DNA of 64,000 bases from Octopus sinensis (Eukaryota), in assembly GCF_006345805.1 (NCBI RefSeq), contig NW_021832837.1, positions 1 to 64,000 on the forward strand, in the 5' to 3' direction. This document shows, one piece after another, positions 7,594-54,550 of this stretch. The position numbers were made by a program, and so were the translations under genes. Numbering within the stretch: the first letter of the stretch is position 1; every line of letters starts with the position of its first letter. The notes beneath the pieces were generated by a model. The model was given only the letters and a program-made list of their open reading frames with translations. It was not told the DNA's origin and did no database searches.

Positions 7594-9875
7594 TTAGTTA
7601 GTTAGTTACCCCGGTTTCTCTAGCATGTAGGAAGCCGGCTGCAATCAGGTAGCGGACAGCGGCGATCGGGCGCTCCCAGAGATCCCGAATCCCAATAGGT
7701 GGCGACTGGTGAGGCGGTCCAAGACAGGAAAAAAAATCTTCAGGGGCGAGGGTGCGGAGTGTTTCGAAAAAGAGTGGATGATGTCCCGAGCGAAGTCGTG
7801 CAAGCTGGACATGGAAGTACCTGTCGAGTGATTGCTCTGAAGAATGGACTGGTGGCGAAGGAGAATCAAGGAGTTTGTTATTTTTAAGCATCCTGATAGC
7901 ACGAGTTGAGATGTAATCGTGAATTAATTTCTTCCCAGTTTTCCCATTGTTCGTTAAGAGTATTTTTGAAAGAGGTCTGCATTGATCGGCTAGAGTAGTG
8001 ATAATATGTCTTTTGTTTTCTGAGATAGAGATTTTGTGGCATGGATGAGATATTTCTTGTATTTCGTAGAGGAATTGAAATCCTCTCATCTTCAAATGGT
8101 CTTCGAACGGAAGGATACAAGATTCCCAATGAAGATGATCGATGGGAGTGGAGGCTAGGCAGCCAGTTATTGTGCGGAGGCCTGAGTTTTGGATTCTTTG
8201 TAGTTCTTGGAGATTTGATAGAGAAAGGTTTTATGACCAAGCCGGACTACCATAGTTCATTGATGATTTGACAAATTGTCTGTAGACCAGAGCGAGGCAT
8301 TCTTTGGCTTGGCCATAAGATTGTCCTGATAAGGCACATAATGCGTTCAGCTTGCGTTTGACTTTGGTGGAAATGAACTTTACATGTTGCGTAAAAGAAA
8401 GGCATTGATCGAATACGATACCAAGGATTTTTGGGTTTTTTACAACAGGAATTCTTTCACCGGCCACATAGAGGGCTGGGTTTAAGTTGAATTGTCGTTT
8501 ATCAGAGGTAAAAACAGTAATAGATGATTTGGATGCTGAAGGAGTCATGACGATGAGGGATAGGAGAAGAGCAGATTTTTGAGCTTAGGACATGACGCGA
8601 AGTCCGGTCAAACGCTTTGCTGATATCAATCAATGCCAGAATTGTTCGTTGGGGAGAAGAGTAGTTGTTAAATCCGTCTGCAATGAAACTCGTTAGGGTA
8701 GATAGATGTGTTGTTGTTGAGTGCTGTGGTCGGAAACCAGGTTGTGACTTTGAGAAAGAGAGGAAAGGGTAAATTGATTTCAGGACAAATTTTTCTAGGA
8801 TTTTTGATATGACAGAGATAAGTGAGATTGGTTTGAACGAGGCGGGGTCGCAGGGGTCCTTATTGGGCTTCAAAATTGGAATTATAATAGATTTTTCCCA
8901 GACCATAGGTATTAGACATGAGTTTAGCGATGTTTTGAATATATCCGATAGTGCGATTAACCCATTTTGGCCAAGATTTTTCAGATGGTATATGCAAAGA
9001 CCGTCGGGTCCACAAGCGTGAGAATTCTTAGCGTTTTTGATGAGTTGGCTTATTTCAGAAATCGATATTGTGATTTCTGGAGAAGGGAAGTTTTTGTCGA
9101 GTTTAAGTTTTCGGCAACGGTTGTCTTTATCCATCTTCATGTGACTGATCTCCGCATAGTGATTCATGAGAGTATTTGCTTGTTCTCTGAAAGATTTTGT
9201 TTGCCCTTTTTTTGTTAAGGCAAGAGGCGTGTGAAGTTGTTTCGGCTGATTGTGATGTATGGATTCCTTTCAGAGCTCTCCAGAAATGCGAGAGCTTGGT
9301 TCTGTGGTCGAGAGAGGAGATAAATTCTGACCATTTATTTCTCTTAACCTTTGCGATCAACTGATTGATTTTCTCGTTGAGGGCAGACAATTCATGCACG
9401 TTTGTGCGGTTGTTCTTTTTCATTAAGCGTCTTTTTTGTATGAGATCTACTATTTCTCTGTTGAAGAATGGTTTAGCATTTTTGTGGAATCCTTTTGGCA
9501 CGTATTTCTTATCAGCCGCCAATATTGTCGATGTGAAGAATCGAATAGCGGAGTCTAGTGAGTTATGGCCTTCTACAGAGAAGCCTTCGAAGGCGGCTTC
9601 TGTATCTTGACGATAGGCGGCCCAATTTGTCTGGTTGTAATTGATGATAGTTTTTCGGAAAATGTCCCGAGGAGATAGGAGGCTGATTGCAATGAGAATC
9701 GGATTGTGGTCCGATGGGAGATCATAAATCACTGACCAATTTATGCGAGAGGAGATCGACGGGGAGCAGAGGGAGAGATCTGGAGAAGTGTTAGTGTCGC
9801 TAGGTCTCAGGGCACACCTTGTGTGTAAGTGTGGGTTGTTCAATATGACAAGATTTTCCAGTTGCGATATTAGTT
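7594..9875 (-). mobile_element. APE+RT LINE (I/Jockey-like), 5'-truncated, RT core partly deleted, (TAAC)n tail
   Basis: 16-bp TSD CAATTTTAACGAGTAA (7578-7593, 9876-9891). APE motif DLPSDHNPI; RT motifs FKPISLISVISKILEK, QPGFRPQHST and DISKAFD; C-terminal LARLRSGH; tail ttagttagttagtta on the + strand. Confidence 0.92.
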
Positions 9876-9984
9876 CAATTTTAACGAGTAAAATATTATT
9901 AATCAAACTTTAGTCTAATGTAGTCGACAAAAACCTTTGAAGTCAAGCCATCCAGTGAAAAAATTAACTATATTAACAAAAATA

Positions 9985-10333
9985 CAGTGCAACTCCTTAT
10001 TGGGGCAACCTCGGGGTTTGGCATTTGAATTTCTATTAGTAGTTTCTTTATTTATTCTTTAAAAAATAAACTCCTTATATTTTTAGTTGGAATTTTTAAA
10101 TTTTATTTTAATAATAACGTATTTGTTTCAATGAAAAATCGGAGATTACGAAGGTTTCAAAAACTAAAAATATAAATAGATTAATTCACAAATTAAAATT
10201 TGGAGAGAAAATAGCGAATCATTCTCCAACAAGTAAAGACTAAAGATTAAAATCGTTAAATGAATATTTTTTTAGTTTTAAGCTCATAAACGTATAATCA
10301 AAAAACCTAGTGCCCAAAAAAGGGGTTAGACTG
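9985..10333. mobile_element. MITE related to Tigger family B
   Basis: TA-flanked imperfect TIRs CAGTGCAACTCCTTATTGGGGCA / TGCCCAAAAAAGGGGTTAGACTG resemble the TIR CAGTATAACCTCCATTTGGGGCA at 26101. Confidence 0.75.
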
Positions 10334-15823: not shown

Positions 15824-15974
15824 GTATTTATAATATTTTTTAGAGAAATTAATGGAAATAAATTTTAATTAGGTATACTAATCAATTATTAACTTTAAAT
15901 ATTATAAATAAAACTTATTTTGTTGAGTTTACAATAAGACTAACCATAAATTAAATAGTTCCTTTTTAAATAGA

Positions 15975-16125
15975 AGGGACGACCCGAGAGATTCCTTTTG
16001 GCTTCTTCAACGCATCTCCATTGCCGTAATCCGTGGCAACTGTTTCGCAATCCGCGAGGCTGGGAGGGCGTCCTAAACTGCATAGTCTTATTTCCTCGAA
16101 CGTGCCTCATTACTATACAGATTTT
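15975..16125 (+). mobile_element. Short 3' fragment of a CRE-like RLE retrotransposon (copy E)
   Basis: Translates DDPRDSFWLLQRISIAVIRGNCFAIREAGRAS*, homologous to the C-termini at 33716, 45856 and 53897. Its 3' UTR start (taaactgcatagtct) resembles that of copy B. Confidence 0.8.
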
Positions 16126-20315: not shown

Positions 20316-20532
20316 CTATACCATTCTCAGTTCAAGTTTGACATTTTTTATACCAATTTTGAAAATTGAATGTCGCATTGTCAAATTTAAATATCGCATT
20401 GTCAAATTTGAATATCGCATTGTTAAAATTGATGCAAAAAGTGTCAAAATTGAATGTCGTATTGTCAAATTTGAATATCGCATTGTCAAAATTGGTGCAA
20501 AAAATGTCAAACTTGAACTGAAAATGGTATAG
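20316..20532. mobile_element. MITE with ~34-bp TIRs and internal 21-bp tandem repeats
   Basis: ctataccattctcagttcaagtttgacatttttt versus aaaaaatgtcaaacttgaactgaaaatggtatag; interior is (tgtcaaatttgaatatcgcat)-like units. Confidence 0.8.
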
Positions 20533-20776
20533 ACTGGCTAATATGCAGCTTTGGATATTTTCCAGTTAATTTTCTACTCAAAGAATCCATCAACAAAACA
20601 AATAGCTGTGAAAACAAAAAGTACCCTTGCAGGATTCCTCTTGATATTTTACTGCTCCGATTTCATGTCTATTAAAATTCAGCTTAACTCACCATTTTGT
20701 AACGAAAGTATGGATTAAACTAATCAAAGAAGTCCACACCATTCCAAAATTTTAAATAAGAATTCATGGCTTACTG

Positions 20777-29760: not shown

Positions 29761-32171
29761 ATTTACCGATTAGTCACTCACGTGGATCCAGGCAGTCCTG
29801 CAGGTATTCATATATACTGCCTGGATTTCTGTAGTGAAGAATGGCCATAACCCTGCTGCTCCTGGAGGTCAGGCCTTCAGACTGTCAGAGATTGGTCAAA
29901 AGCTGGATGAAGACTTAAAAGGGGCCATTTCTTGACAAATGAACTGAGCGGATAAAGATGCTATTTGGCAGTTTGGGGAGGTTAAATCGGGCTACTCGAG
30001 GCTGATTTATGCGGCACATGACAAATATCCAGTCATTGCACTTAATTTTGTTGAAAATGGTGATTTCGCAGGATGCGAAAAGAGAGCAAATGGACCTCAC
30101 CAGAGAAATCACAAGACGTAGGAGAATTTGGATTGGCCACCGCACTAAACCCGCGGGAACAAAGGAACACCTTGCCTTTCGAGCAATGTAGGAGGTGTGC
30201 CACAACGACTTGATACCCATATTGTACACATAGAGAGAACGTAAGTCAAAATTGGTATCCTTCAGCAGAGTTAATAAGGAATCCTGAAACCCATCATCCC
30301 CGAGAACAGTCAATTCGCCAAAATATAAGTAGTCTTACTGTCCTCTCCCCAAACAATTACTATTTTTCTCATTTTCTACCATTTTGGTAATAAAAATCTT
30401 AGTAGGTTTAATTTGCCTTTTCGAGATCATAAATAAGCACTCAACCTCCTTAGGGACACTGAAATTGCACTTCAGGAAATAGTTGCAATTAGAAACATAA
30501 GTAATTACAAGTACAGGTCAAATAGCATTCTTTGGGTCACAAATATATATAGAATAAATTATTGGAAAACATAATCTGGACTCCCAAGTGTATTTTACTC
30601 AAGCAACAAGATAAAGAGTAATCAAAACAAGTTGTTATAACCACAAAAAGTCGCAAATTGCTAATAAATTCAATCAATGTCATGGTACGTCGTCCTCCAT
30701 TATAACTGACGATTAAACCAGTCATTCCAGGTTTCAAATAGTTTTCCTGTGAATCATTCGAGAATACAACAGAAGCAATATCAAGGTTTACATAGGGGAA
30801 TGACTTGTCCACAATGAATTCCTCAAAACTCAACCACAGAACAAATCACTCTCAGGAACGCAGCATCTGTACATGAATTACCCTCAGAAGAATTGGAAAT
30901 AATGTTCAGATCTGCCAATTTAGCTTTTCTCATTTTTGTTGCATAAGAATCAAAGTGGAGCATTCTCCAAACACGGTCCTCACTCAAAATAGACGGCTAC
31001 AATAAGACATTGATCACGTACATTCAAGAAGGACTGCTAATACACATCCGACTGAGAGGTTTAGGATAAGATAAATTCAAGTTTATTAATAACATTTTAT
31101 TTTAAAAATAAGAGATGTTGAGAAGTCTATAAAGCAACCACACCGTTGATTTTTTGAATCCCGAGACCTCTCCTCGTTTTATTACACTAATAATGCTGAC
31201 TGAAACTCTTAATTTTTCTTATTTCCGATAATTGCCTTGATAACTTAATCGTTATAGTTTTCATCTGTTTTCAATAATCACACATTCTAAATTTTTCTGA
31301 TTTTCACTGACTGAATATATCCTTTGGACTAAAAATCTATATTAAATCTTGGCATAAAAGGTTTGTATATTTGGTCACCACTTCAACCCCATATCGAATA
31401 TCTCGATTTTTCCGTTCTGAATTTCAGCAAGTTTTCAAGTAATTAGATTCCAGGTGTTGAGCTTTTCTACTTTCACATGCTTTAAAGGTCATTGTGATTT
31501 AATTTTTTATTTTGATGAGTACTAGGGAGTTTTCTCAACAGTAGAGAGGTTACACCTTCGAAAAATTATAATCAGTATTCTGCTCAACAGACCATTACCA
31601 AACCGAATAGTTTAAAGAAAGTGAGTCTCTTTACAGATAAGATTTAAATTCTATTTTTATTAGTTTACAATACCGCAGAAACTCCAGGCTCATTGATTAC
31701 TTATATTAAAATTCATAATTGACAGAATCAAATGTCTTCTTCACATTCATCCAAATAGCAAATAGTTAATGTCCATCTTAGTATTGACAAAATAGTTTAT
31801 ATGCGCTTTTTTACTATGAAGCTCAACGTTGCCCGCTAACTTCGAGCTGATTATCTAAAATAAAATTAAATGTTTTAATATAGTTGGTAAGTTTTGTATT
31901 TTTACACTTAATGACAAGTTTATATAATCTAGGCATACAGATAATCAGTCTCTTATCTTTTGGGACACGGCACTTTTTATTTTTTGTAATAAGGCATGTT
32001 ACTCGATGCACATCCAATTATCAGGGAAATTGTCTCCATTCTCAATTTCATAAATTTTGTCACATTAATGACAATAAGAGATTCTAACTTAATATAAAAT
32101 CCACAAACTCAGTATCAGACAGATTTCTTCCAATCGGATAAATAATAAAATTAACGGATAACTCCAAATAT

Positions 32172-32411
32172 TTTTTTTTTAGGATAATTTTTTTTTTTAA
32201 GTATATAAAGACCAAATAAAGTTTTAATTAATTAGTATGACCCTAGGATAGCGTGTGAATTTCCGCGGACAATTGCACACGAAATCCTCTGGAAGAGCCA
32301 CGACGTCTCCCGCGGATCACCTGTTTTTTTGGTGATTAGACCACCCAATCTTCGAATGAACGAAAAACTCTCTGTTCCAAAGACTCCGGAAGTCTCCACA
32401 GCGATCGGCTG
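32172..32411 (-). mobile_element. CRE-like RLE retrotransposon 3' fragment (copy A) with poly(A) tail
   Basis: Minus translation QPIAVETSGVFGTESFSFIRRLGGLITKKTGDPRETSWLFQRISCAIVRGNSHAILGSY*; 9-bp TSD TCCAAATAT (32163-32171, 32412-32420). Confidence 0.88.
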
Positions 32412-32491
32412 TCCAAATATATTGTCAAAATTGAATGTTGCATCTTCATTTCGTCATAATATTTAATAATATGAGTCATAGTATTTGGAGT

Positions 32492-33757
32492 GGATCAAAC
32501 TCTGTCCGAAAAAACCTCGAATCTCATATCTTTGTCCAGTAAGCTCACGACAATTGATTCCCATGCGGCTTTATTTCTATTGAAGAATTGCTTCGCGATC
32601 CCCAAGCTAATGTTCACCCTCCGAAGTGCCCCCTGTTTTACAAATCACGTGGGCCTCTTCAGCTTCGACCGTGCCCTCAGGGCATGCCTCGAAGCAATTT
32701 GTAATGCCCCGTTTGATGACCTCGGCTGGGAGCAGGCAATCCTCCCGGTTAGCCACGGTGGCATCGGTGTGCGCTCTGCCGCCGATCTTTCCCTGCCAGC
32801 ATTTCTTTTCTCTGTTCACGCCACCAGCTCTCTGGTCCACGAGATTCTCCAATCCGCTATTGAATCTCCCGTGGACACTGAGTTCTCTTCGGCTGTCAGA
32901 TGCTGGTCCGCTAATGGTCTCAAAGTTCCTGATGATTCGACCAAACAGCGGCAGTGGGACGGAATTTATTCGGACCACAAGTTTTTCCTCCCCAAGTGTA
33001 AACTTGATCAACACCGCCTGGGCTGCCTGCTTGCTGGGTCCCAAAAGTATTCAGGAGCCTGGCTGACAGCTATCCCAATGGTATCAGTCGGGACATTACT
33101 GGATAACGAATGCCTCCGCATCGCAGTCTCTCTGCGCTTGGGATTAAACATCTGCCGTGAACATCAATGCCGCTGCGGCCAGATGATTGACACCCTAGGA
33201 CTGCACCCGCTATCCTGCCGGCGTAGCGCTGGACGTTTCCCTCGACACTCTGGGCTTAATGATGTGGTGAGCCGCGCCCTGGCATCTGCGGGATTCCCTA
33301 ATGTGCTGGAACCAGTCGGGTTGGATCGCGGAGATGGAAAGCGCCCAGATGGCATGACAACATTTCCCTTCGATCACGGGAAATGCCTCATCTGGGACGC
33401 GACATGCTCCGACACATTCTCCCCGCATAACCTGATTTCATCAGTTGCTGAGCCCGGCTCAGCGGCAAGACATGCGGAGGTCACAAAAACAAGAAAATAC
33501 TCGTACCTGGCCAGAAACCACATTTTTGCGCCAGTAGCCGTGGAGACATCCGGGGTCATCGGCCCAGAATCGCTTTCTTTCCTTCGTCGGCTGGGGTTGA
33601 AGATTGCCAGACGAAACAAAGATCCCAACGAGACTCGTCATCTTTTCCAAAGAGTCTCGTTGGCGATCGTCCGAGGGAACTGCCAGGCCATCTTATGCGC
33701 CGGCAGTTCAAAATAACTGCATTGTCTAATGTCTTTATTGTCGTATAAATTAGTTTC
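32492..33757 (+). mobile_element. CRE-like RLE retrotransposon, 5'-truncated (copy B), open ORF of ~408 aa
   Basis: ORF 32490-33716 has the RT thumb (LPVSHGGIGVR), CCHC-like CRCG..LHPLSC..RH and RLE motif KRPDG..WDATCSDT..KTRKY; 11-bp TSD GTATTTGGAGT (32481-32491, 33758-33768). Confidence 0.93.
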
Positions 33758-34485
33758 GTATTTGGAGTTATCCGTTTTATTTAAAACATTTAGTGATGAT
33801 CAAAGGACTAGGTAAACCAGTTAATTTTAATTCCAGTGACTCCCGATGCACTTTGCAAGCGACGGAAATCTTCTGGAAAGGTTCGATTCTGCCCACAATG
33901 TTTTCTGGGGTTAGTTATATTATTAAATAAAGTGATAAGTTCAAAATGACATAATTATAAAATTTAAGGTTGACATAATTATATTAGTATTTATAAAATG
34001 ATATCTTTAAATTAGTTTCTAGAATTTAAAGAATAGCAAACTACAATTTTATGACACATGAGGCCTATTAGTGTTTTCTTTTTTCTTTCAACACTATTCC
34101 ACAACCTTGATATTCAGCATATGTATTAAAAAATAAGTTTTTTGATTTTTTGGTCGAGAAAATGAAGAGAGGAATTTGTAAAATTTGTCAAAAATATTAG
34201 TAAAATGATGAACCTTTGATATTTTTAAACTCAAAAAAACTCCATATAAATATTAAATTTGACCATAAACCTGACTTTTTAAAGATAATTTGAAGTTTTT
34301 CAGGTTCTTAACGTTTTCTCAAAAAGTCTAAGAATTATTGTTTAATAACTTGAAAATCATTTTAAATATTCGAACAAAAGTAAATTATATAAAATTTTTC
34401 TTTTTACGTTATTTTTTCAAATAATTCTGATTTAAATAAATTAATAGATTTTTTAATCAAAGAATTATAAATTTACCTGACAAGA

Positions 34486-35250
34486 ATGTCGACTGTTCTA
34501 ATTACAGTGAAATGCAGCAGTTCAGGATTTGGTTTTGGTGTTGATACGGTTTCAAAATCAAAAAAACATTTTGTCTCTGAAATTTTTCCAAATTCACCTG
34601 CGTCATTCACAAACTTAGAAATCAACGATATAATATTAGAAATTAATAATAAAAATGTTCAAAACAAATCACATAATTATCTCGCAAAACAAATTAAAAA
34701 ATCCACCGGAGAAATTCTATTGCTAGTAAAAAGATTTGAAGTTGTAGAAATCGAAGAAACGAAACTTTCAACAAACAGAGCAGAAAGTATATCACTTCCT
34801 ATAGATACGAAAAATTATTCACCTAGAATATGCCAGATTGCAATATGGAACGGGGAAGATCTGGGAATTCAAATAATCAAGAAAGATCCTGAAAACGGTT
34901 TCTTTATTGTCAATGTGGATGAAAATTCACCAGCGGATGTTGCAGGAATTAGAAACAATGATATTATATTGGAAATCGACTCTATCTCAGTAAAGAATAT
35001 GAATTTTGAAGATGTTTTGCAAGCAATAAAAATTAATTGGGGAACAGTCAGTATTTTAGTTGCGGATGAAAATACTTTCAAACATTTCAGAAATTCTGGT
35101 GCTGAGATTTCTAGTTCAATGAAAAATATCAAAATTTTAAAAAACTACAAACAGTGGAGTTATAAAAACTGGCTTTTCACAATTGATAGCAATTCACTTC
35201 ATTCTCGACTAGTCCGCACAAAGCCGGGATTTAACATAACCTCTCTTTAA
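34486..35250 (+). CDS. NHERF-like two-PDZ protein
   Basis: PDZ1 SSGFGFG..NSPAS..LEINDIILEINN and PDZ2 PRICQI..NSPADVAGIRNNDIILEID..VSILVADENTFKHF; ends NITSL. No intron is needed within the ORF. Confidence 0.82.
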   Translation: MSTVLITVKCSSSGFGFGVDTVSKSKKHFVSEIFPNSPASFTNLEINDIILEINNKNVQNKSHNYLAKQIKKSTGEILLLVKRFEVVEIEETKLSTNRAESISLPIDTKNYSPRICQIAIWNGEDLGIQIIKKDPENGFFIVNVDENSPADVAGIRNNDIILEIDSISVKNMNFEDVLQAIKINWGTVSILVADENTFKHFRNSGAEISSSMKNIKILKNYKQWSYKNWLFTIDSNSLHSRLVRTKPGFNITSL

Positions 35251-36442
35251 TCTTCGCTTTTAGTTAACGATATGGTTTATTCGCACTGCTGTTTTAGCGA
35301 GTCTAACTCCTCCTCCAAAAAAATTCCCCGAAATGCAGGGGTGCACTTAAATAGGAGGGGTTTTGTGGTCAATATTATTTCATTAAATGTTTTTCAAACC
35401 AAACATCTTCCTCTTTGATAGGTCGTTTATCCCATCGGGACTTCTGCTGCTGTTTACTGCAAAGATCTCTTTAGGTCTCAATTGAAAGTGAAATCCAGCA
35501 GTACGGAGTGACGAACGGATGGCTAGTTTTAGTTCTCTATTCCCCGATGAGAGTCCAATTTTGTAGACATAATAGAAAGTGGTAGTCGAGCTCGTCGGCT
35601 TGTACGCCGCATCGGCGTTGGTGTTTGGTCGATACGGGCAGTCTGATCTGTGGCAGATTCCAATCCTCACGGATTTGTCGTCATATAGGCTACCAGTTGT
35701 CTCACAAAAGCAAGAGTCAACCAGCGTTCAGGGGCTGGCTGCTCATTTTTTCACCATGTCAGTTGCCTCGTTCAATTTTTCTTAGCTTTGGCGTAAATTA
35801 GAATTGTAAAGTCGCATCCGATGAAATAGGCAAACACAGTTTCTTCAAAATGGCAAGAAAATCATTAAAACAAAATGATATCCTCTGTCCATTGTAATAA
35901 GAGAGAATAGTGTCAATCATTTCTCCGGACGAAAGCATTGAAGAAAAGTACACCCCATGTGCTAAATCAGCTAAAGTAATCAGACCGATCCCTCCAAAGG
36001 AAACTAGTAGAATGGCTTGCCTGTGCATCAAAGCAGATGTTTAAAATGTTTTCTGCACAGGTCTTTATGAATTGAGCGTAAAAATCACTAAAAATAAAAA
36101 CAATATAGTTCCATAAATTGTCCTAAAATTGTTCTTGAAATATTTCTGGAAATTTGGGAATTTTGAAATTGTTAAAATTTCAACTTTTTGGGACAATTAA
36201 ATTTCCAATACTTACAAGAATAAGGTTTCCTGTGGTCCAAAGAAGGGTCGGACTCTATCTGGTTTCAAAAAATTTTCAATTGTCAATTTACTGTTTTTAT
36301 CAAAATATTTTCTCTTCATTTCAAAACAAAAAAAAAAATTTCAAAACATAGATGCTTTAGAATTAATATGACTTAAATAAAAATAAATTTTAAATTATTT
36401 TGTAATTGTTAATCTATAACAAAAAAGTAATTCTAAAATAAT

Positions 36443-44132: not shown

Positions 44133-45320
44133 TGCTTCTTAATTTTAATGTTTTAAAGGTTAGAAGGTGCCCCAATTTTTTTCATAATTTTAGAAATTTA
44201 GTCTTAAGATTAATTTGGTAATAAATTTAATATTCTAAAAAAACAAATATCACTGTTTTGAACTCGAAAAACACTACAATTGCACATCGTTTTCGAGAAT
44301 TATATAGATTAAATAACACTTAATTATTCAACCATTTTTAATGCCCATTATTTATACCCATTTTTTTGAAAAATGATAGCAAAGTTCGCTTCATTGCTAT
44401 CGGCTGTGGTTCCTTGCTTTTTGTACCGAAATGTTTGTTTAGAACGAGCTCCGACAATCTTGTAACTGGTTAATCTTACATATAAATTAAAAAGTCCTAG
44501 GAGTGAAAAATATAGTCACATTTGAACGTTTGTGACATTATGACACAAGCATTAAAGACTAAATAAAACGTTATTACTGTTTGAGAGTTCGCGCATTTGA
44601 ACTGATGGGCCTTAATTTTGACATAAAAAAGGTCGAATTACTGAAAATATCATATAATCAAACGTGTTTTCTTCAACAGCAGAAGAGCTCTTGAATGCTT
44701 TTCCAGTAACTATAAGTGTAGAGAAATTCTACTTTGGAGAGAAGAAAATTATTTATAAACGAGCTCAAACCTTTCTCTTACAGAAATCTAAATTGTATCA
44801 TATTCGTGTTTCTAGATATTTATTATAAATTCATTATTCTGAAGTGTTAAATCTTTTACATCATGCGGACATCACCTTATTTCCTGGTTAGCGAAATGCT
44901 CTTTTCTTTAGATAACATAATTTTTGTGATATTCTGAATGTTCATATTAACAATTCGGCATGCAAATTTTTAAACTACTTATCTTTAAACGCTCCTATTG
45001 ACTCTTCACTCCTATAATTTAAAATTTTACTTTTCGTTTTTAAATACATTTTTTGAGGTTTCTATTGACTGTTAAAGTCTATTTTTGACTTAAGGCAAAT
45101 ATATTTAATTAGATGAAACAAAACTGACTACGACTATCACAAAAATTTAAAATTCCAAATTTTTTTGATAGTATTAACTTAAGCCAGATCAATCCGTACA
45201 AACACTAGTTGTTTCTGTTTTTTAAATTTCGAGGATAAAAACAACACCGGACCTGTAAACTTAATTTCATTATTATGTTAATCAGTTCCTATCAGTTCGG
45301 TGAAAAATAATTAGAAAGGC

Positions 45321-45899
45321 TGGCCGCATCCCGTTTCGCTTTGGATTGCACGCTCTATCGTGCAGACGCAGTGCTGGCCGCATCCCGCGTCACGCCGCTC
45401 TTAACGACCTTATCAGGAGAGCCCTGGAAGTCGCCGGAATCCCCTCCCTGCTTGAACCCACTGGGATCGATCGGGGAGACGGAAAAAGGCCTGACGGGAT
45501 AACTGTGTTTCCTTTCAACAGGGGGAAGCCTCTCACCTGGATGCCACGTGTGTGACTCTTTCTCGCCTCAGAACCTGCTGATGTCGGCCTCCGCTCCTGG
45601 ATCTATTGTCACAACCGCGGAATGCAAAAAGATGCGGAAGTACTCCTCACTTACGGAGAAGTTCCAATTCCTTCCATTCGCGGTTGAGACTTCCGGTTCC
45701 TTGGGCAGTAAGGCAATCAGCTTCGTTCAGGAGATCGGATCCCGCATGTCTGCCATCACAGGCGACGCCCGCAAATCGAGATGGTTTTTCGAGCGGATAT
45801 CCCTTGCGATAGTACGCTCTAATTCTTTCTCGATCGCGTCGGCTTCCCGCACTTGAAGCTTTTAATTAATTAACTTGTAGTTATTGGTTGGTTTTCTTT
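45321..45899 (+). mobile_element. CRE-like RLE retrotransposon 3' fragment (copy C)
   Basis: [33 protein letters not shown] and FFERISLAIVRSN; 13-bp TSD TAATTAGAAAGGC (45308-45320, 45900-45912). Confidence 0.9.
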
Positions 45900-45975: not shown

Positions 45976-47571
45976 AAGTGATTCTTAACGGGGGCGCCAG
46001 CGCCCCCTAGGGGCACTGGAACATATTAGGGGGCGCTGGAATTTTATTTTTATAATTATTATAAATATTTATATTAGTTTTTGTAAATCATTATCACATG
46101 CTTTTCTATTAATTCTAAATTAACAATTTTTAAAACTGTTGAACAATACCCTTTAACAATATTACAGATCAATTACACGAGCAAAGAATTTATAGATAAT
46201 TGTTATAACTTTATCATTTAGTAAATTGATTTTATTGAAAGCTGATATTACGTGTGGACACTACAATCAAGACGGACACTATAGTGAGTAATAATAAACC
46301 GGACATTTTTGTCTTTGACAAAGTTCGGAATATTATTGCGCTTATCAAAATTGGGATTACTTCTCAGCAATCCTTGAAGCAAGTAGAAGTAGAAAAATTA
46401 CATAAATATGACCTTTTGGCGAACGAATTGAAGGTAATCCATAAAGCAAAAATGAATGTCATACCGTTGGTTATTACGTGGGATGGAATAACATCAAGAT
46501 TCTATAAACACTACCAGAACTCCTTGCAAGTCCAGGAATCTACGCGAGCTCATATCCAGTCAATCGTGATCAAGAGAACATTGGAAAGCATGCGCCCGGA
46601 GTATAAACTCCTTCCTACAGCGGCGAAGCATGCAATTAAATCGGACTCGAGAACAATTACAAAAGTGGCCTGCCCTGTAAAATGGATAAGTGTACCCGTC
46701 GAAGACACTTGCTCGGGCTCGAAGAGGAGGAGAATTGACTGAACGCAGACTCAATAATTAAAAATCAATTTTATCTGGACTTTTCAAATAAATAATTATT
46801 TAATTTGAAAGCTGATATAGTTTATCTAGCTGATATTTTTCATAAAATTAATGAAATAAATATTAGATTGCAAGGAAACAAAATTAATTTAATAAATGTT
46901 AAAGGAATTATTATGCCTTTTATTGAAAAAATACATCTCTATGAAAACAATATCAAGAAAAAGATGTTTATTAATTTTCCAAGTCTACACAAATTTGGGG
47001 TTTTTTTGTGATAATAATGAAAATTGGCTTTGAAGATTTAGCAAATTTAAAATTTTTTGATTGATATATAAATTCATTTAAAACTGAAAATGTTAATTTA
47101 TCTCCAGAAATAACAGAACATTTATTAAATCTGAAATATGATCTTGAAGCTAAAATCATTTTTTTACAAACTTGGATATCAACAATTCCGGATTACACAT
47201 AGAAAAAAATTCTCAATTGTGAAATGAAGTTGAAACGCTTATAATATCATTTTTTTCAACGTAGTTAAAAAAAATTTAGTGCAGTCTCCAATATTTTGAT
47301 CAAAAAAAATATAAATTCCAAATTGTGAATAGATGAGATTTGAGACTTAATCTGTCAAATAGGGAGGCTGACATAAGTAAACTGACAAATTCTTATCAGA
47401 CACAAAGCAGTCATTAAATATTCGATAACATTAAAATTAAGAAATTGTCTAAAAAATTGCCGAATAAATCTATAATTGAAAAAATAATTAATTTTAAGGG
47501 TGCGCTGAAATTTTAGAGTTTTAAAATTGTGTCAAAAGGGGCGCTGACTTAAAAAAGGTTAAGAACCACTG
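45976..47571 (+). mobile_element. hAT (Buster/Charlie-like) element, internally deleted, interrupted by an RLE retroelement
   Basis: TIR (C/A)AGTG(A/G)TTCTTAAC; flanks TTATAAAC / TTATAGAT; remnant LKADIVYLADIFHKINEINIRLQGNK..FPSL. Confidence 0.82.
46249..46804 (+). mobile_element. RLE non-LTR family 2, 3' fragment
   Basis: DTTIKTD..NKPDIFVFDK..IGITSQ..VEVEKLHKYDLLANEL; 14-bp TSD TTGAAAGCTGATAT (46235-46248, 46805-46818). Confidence 0.88.
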
Positions 47572-53825: not shown

Positions 53826-54550
53826 TTTTTTTTCATTTAATTTACACACAACAACAAAGTTAAGAAACATATTCGAGTGAAAAGGTAGAATTATGTTTAT
53901 GGTGGATATGTAGCCTGGCGGATTGCCAAACTGTTTCCGCGGATAATGGCGATCGAGAGCCGTTGCATTAGCCAGTTCGCCTCCCGAGGATCATGGGTGC
54001 GCATTGAGATTTTGGCTCCGAGCTTGCGAAGGAACTTTTCAGTTTTTGGACCGAGAGCACCCGACGTCTCAGCCGCGATCGGCACCACGGAAAACTTCTC
54101 CGAGAGGGCAGAATATTTTAAAAGCTTTAAATCTTCAGCCTTCTTAGCTGCAGATTTGGCCTCCAGGGCACACGAAGTTAAGTGAGAAGCAGAAAAGGTG
54201 TCGCAGCAGGTTGCGTCCCAAACGAGGCCTTTTCCGCCTTCGAAGGGGAAAAGGGTCATCCCGTCAGGACGTTTCCCGTCGCCGCGGTCAAGGCCCGGTG
54301 GTTCGAGAACCGAAGGAAATCCCGCCGAGTCGAGGGCCCTCCGTATGATGTCGTTCATGGCAGAGTGCCTCGGGAAACGTCCGGCACTCCTCCTGCACGA
54401 TAAAGGGTGCAGACCGAAAGGGTCAACAGTGCAGCCACAGCGGCACGTGTGCGAAACACATTGCCTTAGTCCGAGTCGCAGAGAGACTCCGATCCTTACC
54501 GCTTCATCGTCAAGGAGAGTGCCAGATGGGGCGTTCGGGAATGCACAAAG
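53826..54550 (-). mobile_element. CRE-like RLE retrotransposon 3' fragment (copy D)
   Basis: [30 protein letters not shown] and LMQRLSIAIIRGN; 11-bp TSD CCTCTTTAACT (53815-53825, 54551-54561); short A-tail. Confidence 0.9.

Follow-up and report, generated by a model that had tools for sequence, protein, structure and literature searches.

Anatomy of the locus at 32152-33777

The window analysed here, 64,000 nucleotides of Octopus sinensis (NCBI RefSeq assembly GCF_006345805.1, contig NW_021832837.1, positions 1 to 64,000 of the forward strand), is A/T-rich nuclear DNA with a G+C content (GC) of about 0.32, rising to 0.45 across the region described. This region holds two fragments of long interspersed nuclear elements (LINEs) with a restriction-like endonuclease (RLE), copy A and copy B, which lie in opposite orientations in the two ends of a probable miniature inverted-repeat transposable element (MITE) of pogo type. 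The outer limits of the arrangement are set by a perfect 18-bp inverted repeat (AACGGATAACTCCAAATA at 32153-32170; TATTTGGAGTTATCCGTT at 33759-33776). With up to three mismatches allowed, the 18-mer has these two matches only in the 64 kb; 0.09 were expected, and two were found in 0 of 100 shuffled sequences.

On the left, the TA flank of the MITE (32152-32153) corresponds to the target duplication expected of Tc1/mariner/pogo elements and also flanks the terminus in three metagenome contigs (L009, L017 and L018) treated below. It is followed by the left terminal inverted repeat (TIR), ACGGATAACTCCAAATA (32154-32170, plus strand), which the two ends of the DDE_1 element in L009 match exactly. 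The target-site duplication (TSD) of copy A, TCCAAATAT (9 bp, script-checked), lies beside the 3' tail of A at 32163-32171, its first A being inseparable from the A-rich tail, and recurs at the truncated 5' end (32412-32420; read directly and by script). Copy A itself (32172-32411, minus strand) is a 5'-truncated fragment of 240 bp, located by tblastn, with an open reading frame (ORF) at 32232-32399; it contains the last ~55 codons, the 3' untranslated region (UTR) and the A-rich tail. The 60-bp MITE interior (32421-32480) has a 16-mer, TGTCAAAATTGAATGT, in common with tandem units at 20316-20536. Copy B (32492-33757, plus strand), 5'-truncated and 1266 bp long, stands between two copies of the 11-bp TSD GTATTTGGAGT, the 5' copy (32481-32491) script-checked and the 3' copy (33758-33768) read directly and by script; B lacks a poly-A tail, its 3' end adjoining the target sequence directly. 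The open frame of B (ORF B below; 408 codons, 32490-33716) encodes thumb/linker, CCHC knuckle and RLE, the reverse transcriptase (RT) being absent. The right TIR, located in the 18-mer scan (33759-33775, minus strand; TATTTGGAGTTATCCGT on the plus strand), is bordered by the counterpart of the TA flank at 33776-33777, which reads TT with one mismatch.

When A and B are removed and the flanks joined, a 98-bp sequence with perfect 18-bp arms results, and the repeat stops there. The MITE proper measures 96 bp and has 17-bp TIRs; the 18th base of the repeat belongs to the TA flank. In the orientation of each LINE copy, the 3' end abuts (A/G)TATTTGGAGTTATCCGT, the junction lying one base before TATTTGGAGTTATCCGT. 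A first-pass annotation, made from the letters of the window, had described this arrangement, and direct reading together with a script reproduced its lengths and strands for A and B, its TSD lengths and its inverted repeat to the base; the two peptides that it quoted for A and B are present, the position of the 3' junction was read at both ends, and joining of the flanks confirmed the rebuilt 98-bp element with its perfect 18-bp ends.

Identity of the LINE fragments and of their target

Sequence searches of ORF B against Pfam and PDB yielded nothing useful, and a look-up of its exact protein matched no contig. In an alignment with 37 homologues (38 sequences), the motifs C-x-C...H...C, RH..N, E, RPDG, WD.T and K...Y were invariant, the residues conserved in all 38 including C227, C229, H239, C243, R285-P-D287, D303 and K333. 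An AlphaFold model built from the homologue alignment (pLDDT 93.7, pTM 0.91) had seven significant matches in PDB (E 1.6e-9 to 1.4e-7; TMq ~0.6), each of them to an R2 retrotransposon protein caught in target-primed reverse transcription (TPRT). On this model, ORF B comprises the thumb/linker, CCHC knuckle and RLE of an R2-like LINE protein.

Further copies were sought in 130 kb of octopus DNA, made up of the window and three other O. sinensis loci (L002-L004). A near full-length relative of 1007 aa is encoded on another O. sinensis contig (L004, 14485-17508) and carries a PHD-type finger, RVT_1, a CCHC knuckle and an RLE. Its RT matches RVT_1 with E 3.6e-16 and has R2 as the nearest PDB structure (E 4e-8); its N-terminus matches PF00628 (PHD) with E 1.2e-4, below the curated cut-off, and PHD fingers in PDB with E 0.004-0.03. 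Because the ORF B model matches only R2 proteins, and because this relative combines a PHD finger, RT, CCHC knuckle and RLE, the elements are classed as RLE-type LINEs, in line with the earlier assignment to RLE non-LTR retrotransposons, which the R2-only structure matches and the invariant CCHC and RPD..D..K motifs bear out. The footprints of TPRT are also present: TSDs of 9, 11, 11, 13, 13 and 11 bp for A, B, C, D, L3a and L3b, respectively, and A-rich tails in A, C, L2c and L4a.

The same PHD-type finger (C4HC3) begins a second octopus RLE-LINE protein (L002, 8573-9256), and neither protein starts with a zinc-finger/Myb module as in R2. A finger of this type suggests that the N-terminus reads chromatin rather than DNA sequence. 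A literature search for a PHD finger in the R4/Dong clades turned up no description.

The first-pass annotation had called the elements CRE-like, and three hints point away from that clade. First, an R separates the first two Cys of the CCHC knuckle, a feature described for R2, Dong, NeSL and Utopia (PMC5678591). Second, the best protein matches of ORF B are named O. sinensis, and the closest named relatives outside octopus are lepidopteran. Third, the sole RLE LINE reported from octopus, in a repeat library, was called Dong, of the R4 clade (PMC9115989). Insertion in spliced-leader RNA genes, the trait of the CRE clade, was not seen among the ~12 copies, which occupy varied A/T-rich sites.

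For the target, metagenome contigs were scanned with the 18-mer, giving 12 loci. Eleven of these were single chance matches inside unrelated contigs. The twelfth (L009; 1238 bp, GC 0.30) contains the 18-mer twice, inverted, as the ends of a ~900-bp element flanked by TA on both sides (TATA|ACGGATAACTCCAAATAGTGTC ... GACACTATTTGGAGTTATCCGT|TATA), with 17/17 identity to the octopus TIR; the ORF of this element encodes a DDE_1, pogo/Tigger-type transposase fragment (Pfam E 1.7e-15). Two other metagenome contigs carry TA|ACGGATAAAGCCAAATA (L017; 15/17) and TA|ACGGATTTCCCCGAATA (L018; 13/17) upstream of related transposase genes, the TA flank being seen on the one end present in each contig. On these matches, the octopus inverted repeat is identified as the 17-bp end that characterises a family of pogo-type transposons, together with one base of the TA flank, and the rebuilt 96-bp non-coding element as a probable MITE derived from such a family. 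The earlier description of the target as MITE-like is thereby given a family, the 17-bp end and TA flank being those of a pogo/DDE_1 terminus; of the transposase that was to be sought, a DDE_1 pogo-type gene was found in L009 and none of this family in the octopus DNA.

L009 is the JGI (Joint Genome Institute) metagenome contig Ga0307474_10299878, a pogo-type element of an A/T-rich eukaryote whose nearest named transposase relatives are from Phytophthora. The exact match of its 17-bp terminus with that of octopus could reflect a strongly conserved TIR or horizontal transfer. A small RNA gene was considered as the target and discarded, as no Rfam family or transfer RNA (tRNA) matched at the A/B site.

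The MITE interior touches a second element of the window. At 20316-20536 lies a foldback/MITE-like element whose inverted ends measure ~35 bp (CTATACCATTCTCAGTTCAAGTTTGACATTTTTT...) and whose interior has tandem units of ~22 bp (ATTGTCAAATTTGAATATCGC), one of which holds the 16-mer found in the 96-bp MITE; a terminus like that of this element (ACTATACCAATTTCAAGTC) adjoins LINE copy L3b in L003.

Two insertions at mirror-image positions

Copies A and B are 67% identical in DNA over 163 aligned bases, and the 18-mers that flank them and both TSDs are 100% identical. Because the copies have diverged to this extent while flanks and TSDs are perfect, A and B are separate insertions of two diverged, related LINE families. 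In the C-terminal 55 residues, the nearest of twelve copies to A is B (65%). The head-to-head layout superficially resembles an inversion, and an origin by inverted duplication, gene conversion, twin priming or two random insertions was weighed accordingly. Such an origin is effectively refuted: the 67% identity contrasts with the perfect arms and TSDs, which rules out twin priming and inverted duplication; each copy has a direct TSD of its own, of different length; the inverted repeat is also found, on its own account, at the ends of transposons in other organisms; and the random expectation is ~1e-9. The independence of the two events claimed at first pass is thus upheld, and the derivation of A and its flank from B by inverted duplication or conversion, named there as its possible undoing, disagrees with the same figures. 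A 3' transduction, in which the 18-mers would be LINE 3' ends, was ruled out by the direct TSD of each copy and by the occurrence of the 18-mer as a transposon terminus elsewhere. An apparent extension of the homology of A into its 5' TSD disappeared without composition adjustment and is microhomology at most. An orthologous empty site was sought via the neighbouring PDZ ORF (34486-35250), for which only the window's own protein matched.

Because the LINE superfamily is extremely dense, neighbouring LINE insertions are common. From superfamily 3' junctions at about 1 per 9 kb, two random hits on one defined base and orientation in both arms are expected with a probability of ~1e-9, and chance is far from explaining why one and the same base was used mirror-symmetrically. 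As both arms have the same sequence, any sequence-directed nick, or any symmetric structure-directed nick, accounts for the mirror image. The data point to two independent insertions, one into each end of a single pogo-type MITE and both directed by sequence, the directing role of the sequence being inferred, and we put the probability that the A/B branch has a common sequence preference for this TIR at roughly 0.55.

The course of events would be as follows. A 96-bp non-autonomous pogo-type MITE with 17-bp inverted ends ACGGATAACTCCAAATA would have lain at a TA in an octopus intergenic region, and two related but distinct LINE families, each encoding PHD finger, RT, CCHC knuckle and RLE, would have inserted once each into it by TPRT. 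The RLE is presumed to have nicked one strand at N|(A/G)TATTTGGAG, one base inside the inner TIR edge and 18-19 nt from the tip; the freed 3'-OH would have served as primer for complementary DNA, copied from the LINE RNA starting at its 3' end; cleavage of the second strand, 9 nt further out for A and 11 nt for B, would have given the TSDs; and an early end of reverse transcription would have left the 5' truncations. With arms of the same sequence in opposite orientation, a sequence-directed enzyme would reach the mirror-image base in both. Each insertion cuts a TIR off from its outermost 7-9 bp, which should have disabled the MITE.

The position of the nick admits a second account, in which the MITE forms a hairpin, for example as single-stranded DNA at a replication fork, and an RLE related to Holliday-junction resolvases cuts the stem-loop junction whatever its sequence. 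In both arms the first nick is placed on the 5' side of the loop, one nt past the point where the perfect 18-bp stem stops on its inner side, in a fold of -32.9 kcal/mol; according to two reports (PMC4838377, PMC6895275), the R2 endonuclease resembles archaeal resolvases and second-strand cleavage needs branched DNA. Set against this, extrusion from duplex DNA is poor for a stem of 18 bp that carries a loop of 62 nt, first-strand nicking of the R2 type is known to act on duplex DNA, and L3a and L3b (L003), themselves nested in inverted-repeat elements or close to them, occupy positions other than stem-loop junctions. We judge structure-directed nicking improbable; at a single palindromic locus, a reading of sequence and a reading of structure are inseparable.

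R1 and R2 elements are known to be co-transcribed with their target and to rely on the sequence downstream to initiate precisely. By that precedent, the parents of A and B may already have stood at this position in other MITE copies, so that downstream TIR sequence in their read-through RNA annealed to nicked TIRs and no specific endonuclease was needed. The missing poly-A tail of B, which ends right at the target, agrees with such homing; the A-rich tail of A, which sits between 3' UTR and target, does not, and a nick at the right place would still be required. This account is held to be very improbable.

The remaining copies bear on the specificity of the preferred reading, that of a sequence preference in the A/B branch. 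Three lie in the window, at sites unrelated to the TIR: copy C (53921-54550, minus strand), with the TSD AGTTAAAGAGG; copy D (45316-45844, plus strand), with one frameshift and the TSD TAATTAGAAAGGC; and copy E (15972-16070, plus strand), a short 3' fragment with an imperfect TSD beginning TTTTAAAT. The junctions of L3a and L3b in L003 have the TSDs AAGAAACTGTTAT and AATAGACAAAT; the flanks after the tail read GAATAGATATC (L2c), GATAGTTTGAAG (L4a), ATAGTTTTAGTAG (L2a), CAAATTAAAAT (L2b) and TCCGAAAAG (L4b). The LINE superfamily as a whole is not site-specific, and the A and B families may be. The first-pass annotation had itself cautioned that C, D and E sit in other sequences, as they do; the motif whose enrichment in 3' flanks it proposed to test abuts A and B, and the other resolved superfamily copies, 10 of 10, are at unrelated sites. 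A preference for TATTTGGAGTTATCCGT at a pogo-type end, if real, would accordingly be common to the A/B branch and not to the whole superfamily.

These sites also raise the prospect of a loose preference that has nothing to do with transposons, namely for an A/T-rich run followed by GGAG or GAGG-like purines, which happens to be present in both MITE arms. Other TSDs have a similar flavour (AGTTAAAGAGG, TAATTAGAAAGGC, TTTTAAATAGAAGGG, GATAGTTTGAAG, ATAGTTTTAGTAG), the superfamily is dispersed and extremely abundant, and a PHD finger is not a reader of sequence. Nevertheless, the ~12 sites have no position-specific consensus, the TSDs AAGAAACTGTTAT and AATAGACAAAT do not fit, and the same nick position in two families is unlikely with a degenerate motif. 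Both MITE sites are filled, whereas the 17 other TATTTGGA sites in the 130 kb, one other TATTTGGAG site among them, are unoccupied. A loose motif is therefore regarded as a rather unlikely explanation.

Several points weigh against a dedicated recognition of the TIR. The families of A and B are represented by one copy each, so that their record of two out of two at the same TIR base comes from one locus. The ten further resolved copies have A/T-rich sites, often followed by purines, and no site in common; the nearest relatives of B, L2a and L2b (68-69% in the last 55-66 residues), are among those in unrelated sites. The relatives have a single PHD-type finger in place of the N-terminal zinc-finger/Myb DNA-binding module. 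A second copy of the MITE (up to three mismatches; BLAST of the 98-bp element and a fuzzy TIR search) was absent from the 130 kb of octopus DNA, and the empty 98-bp elements anticipated at first pass were likewise not found there; the right TA duplication reads TT. Finally, the nick one nt beyond the inner edge of the perfect repeat would be the stem-loop junction if the element were folded, where a structure-directed cut is predicted as well.

A stronger version of the preferred reading is that the A/B branch is a homing lineage on the pogo-type TIR, disabling the transposon as it inserts: it would be the first RLE LINE specialised on a DNA transposon, with a cut at the inner repeat edge that might be read from the hairpin. 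This version we advance tentatively, as possible without being probable. A dedicated transposon-in-transposon lifestyle is not provable from one locus.

Some observations on the superfamily stand apart from the question of target choice. About 20 of its fragments occur in the 130 kb, roughly one per 6-9 kb, in many families with only 35-70% protein identity, a density and diversity unusually high for RLE-type LINEs. In L003 (6420-12043), L3b (minus strand) and L3a (plus strand) are placed head-to-head ~170 bp apart, like A and B; L3a lies in the loop of an 88-bp foldback (82% identical) and L3b 29 bp outside it, at positions that are not symmetric. A stretch at 35567-36031 (minus strand) weakly resembles the linker region of ORF B at the protein level (26-29%) and is probably an old fragment of another LINE family. 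Two contigs obtained from close protein matches (L020, L021) were set aside; they belong to another organism (GC 0.43-0.45) and have no DNA similarity and no clear junctions.

Known systems and neighbouring features

To our knowledge, the targets of site-specific RLE LINEs are multicopy RNA genes, microsatellites and telomeres, and elements of this kind such as R2 are under development as gene-insertion tools. If the preference for the TIR is true, a 17-bp transposon end read without a zinc-finger/Myb module would be a new target class for the RLE type; the question would arise whether recognition relies on sequence, on RNA pairing or on a hairpin, and the locus would show clearly how one parasite exploits and inactivates another in a very repeat-rich cephalopod genome. 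Should no more than a loose motif preference be involved, this is an ordinary nested insertion.

Use of a transposon as the target of a LINE has been described before. The Tx1L and Tx2L LINEs of Xenopus laevis insert at a specific sequence in the DNA transposons Tx1D and Tx2D (PMC6719617), and "transposons" are among the listed targets of LINEs (PMC4640811). Common to these systems and the octopus locus is a defined sequence within a DNA transposon as a landing site with low cost to the host. They differ in that Tx1L belongs to the Tx1 clade and has an AP-type (apurinic/apyrimidinic) endonuclease, whereas the octopus elements have a C-terminal RLE, and in that the octopus target is the TIR itself, common to two families and seen at one locus. 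The new "transposon-on-transposon" niche proposed in the first-pass annotation is overstated in its novelty, Tx1L into Tx1D being known already (PMC6719617, PMC4640811). Targeting of a transposon TIR by an RLE LINE would be a new variant on a strategy already described and would open no category of its own.

With R2 and the other RLE clades (R4/Dong, NeSL/Utopia, HERO, CRE), the octopus elements have in common a single protein with RT, linker, CCHC knuckle and PD-(D/E)xK endonuclease, and TPRT with TSDs; R2 differs by its zinc-finger/Myb module, where the octopus relatives have a PHD finger at the N-terminus. The RLE clades are reported to target ribosomal RNA, spliced-leader, U2 and tRNA genes and microsatellites, HERO and some Utopia families being non-specific (PMC4640811). 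The octopus copies are dispersed over many unrelated sites, like HERO or reptile Utopia, and are not confined to ribosomal DNA, spliced-leader or U2 genes.

The target resembles pogo/Tigger-type (DDE_1) MITEs of the Tc1/mariner superfamily in its 17-bp perfect TIRs, its left TA flank and the lack of coding capacity in the 96-bp element. It departs from them in its TT right flank, in that neither an autonomous partner nor a second copy was found in the octopus DNA examined, and in that, among named transposases, the closest relatives belong to Phytophthora and not to animals. Nested MITEs offer a further parallel: for Tourist into Tourist, in maize and rice, nested copies were likewise the basis for inferring preferential nesting (PMC6719617). 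Tourist elements are DNA transposons whose target motifs are short, whereas the octopus invaders are retrotransposons and their position is base-exact.

Beyond the locus, an intact single-exon ORF of 254 aa with two PDZ domains (34486-35250; Pfam E 1e-23) begins 710 bp downstream of the MITE; it had no close homologue besides itself in the protein collection, and it is on record at identical coordinates in contig VCDQ01013049.1 (98,298 bp) of NCBI assembly GCA_006345805.1. ORFs with FAM200/ZBED5-type (hAT-derived) RNase-like domains lie beside LINE copies in L003 (8134-8568) and L004 (13157-14170), and one of them appears to interrupt L3b. At 8001-10000 of the window, GC reaches 0.405 with a GC skew of +0.27, the rest of the window having 0.27-0.37 GC. 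Just downstream of LINE copy D, a G+C-rich palindromic stretch (45985-46045; GGGGGCGCCAGCGCCCCCTAGGGGCACTGG ... AGGGGGCGCTGG) is probably the end of another repeat.

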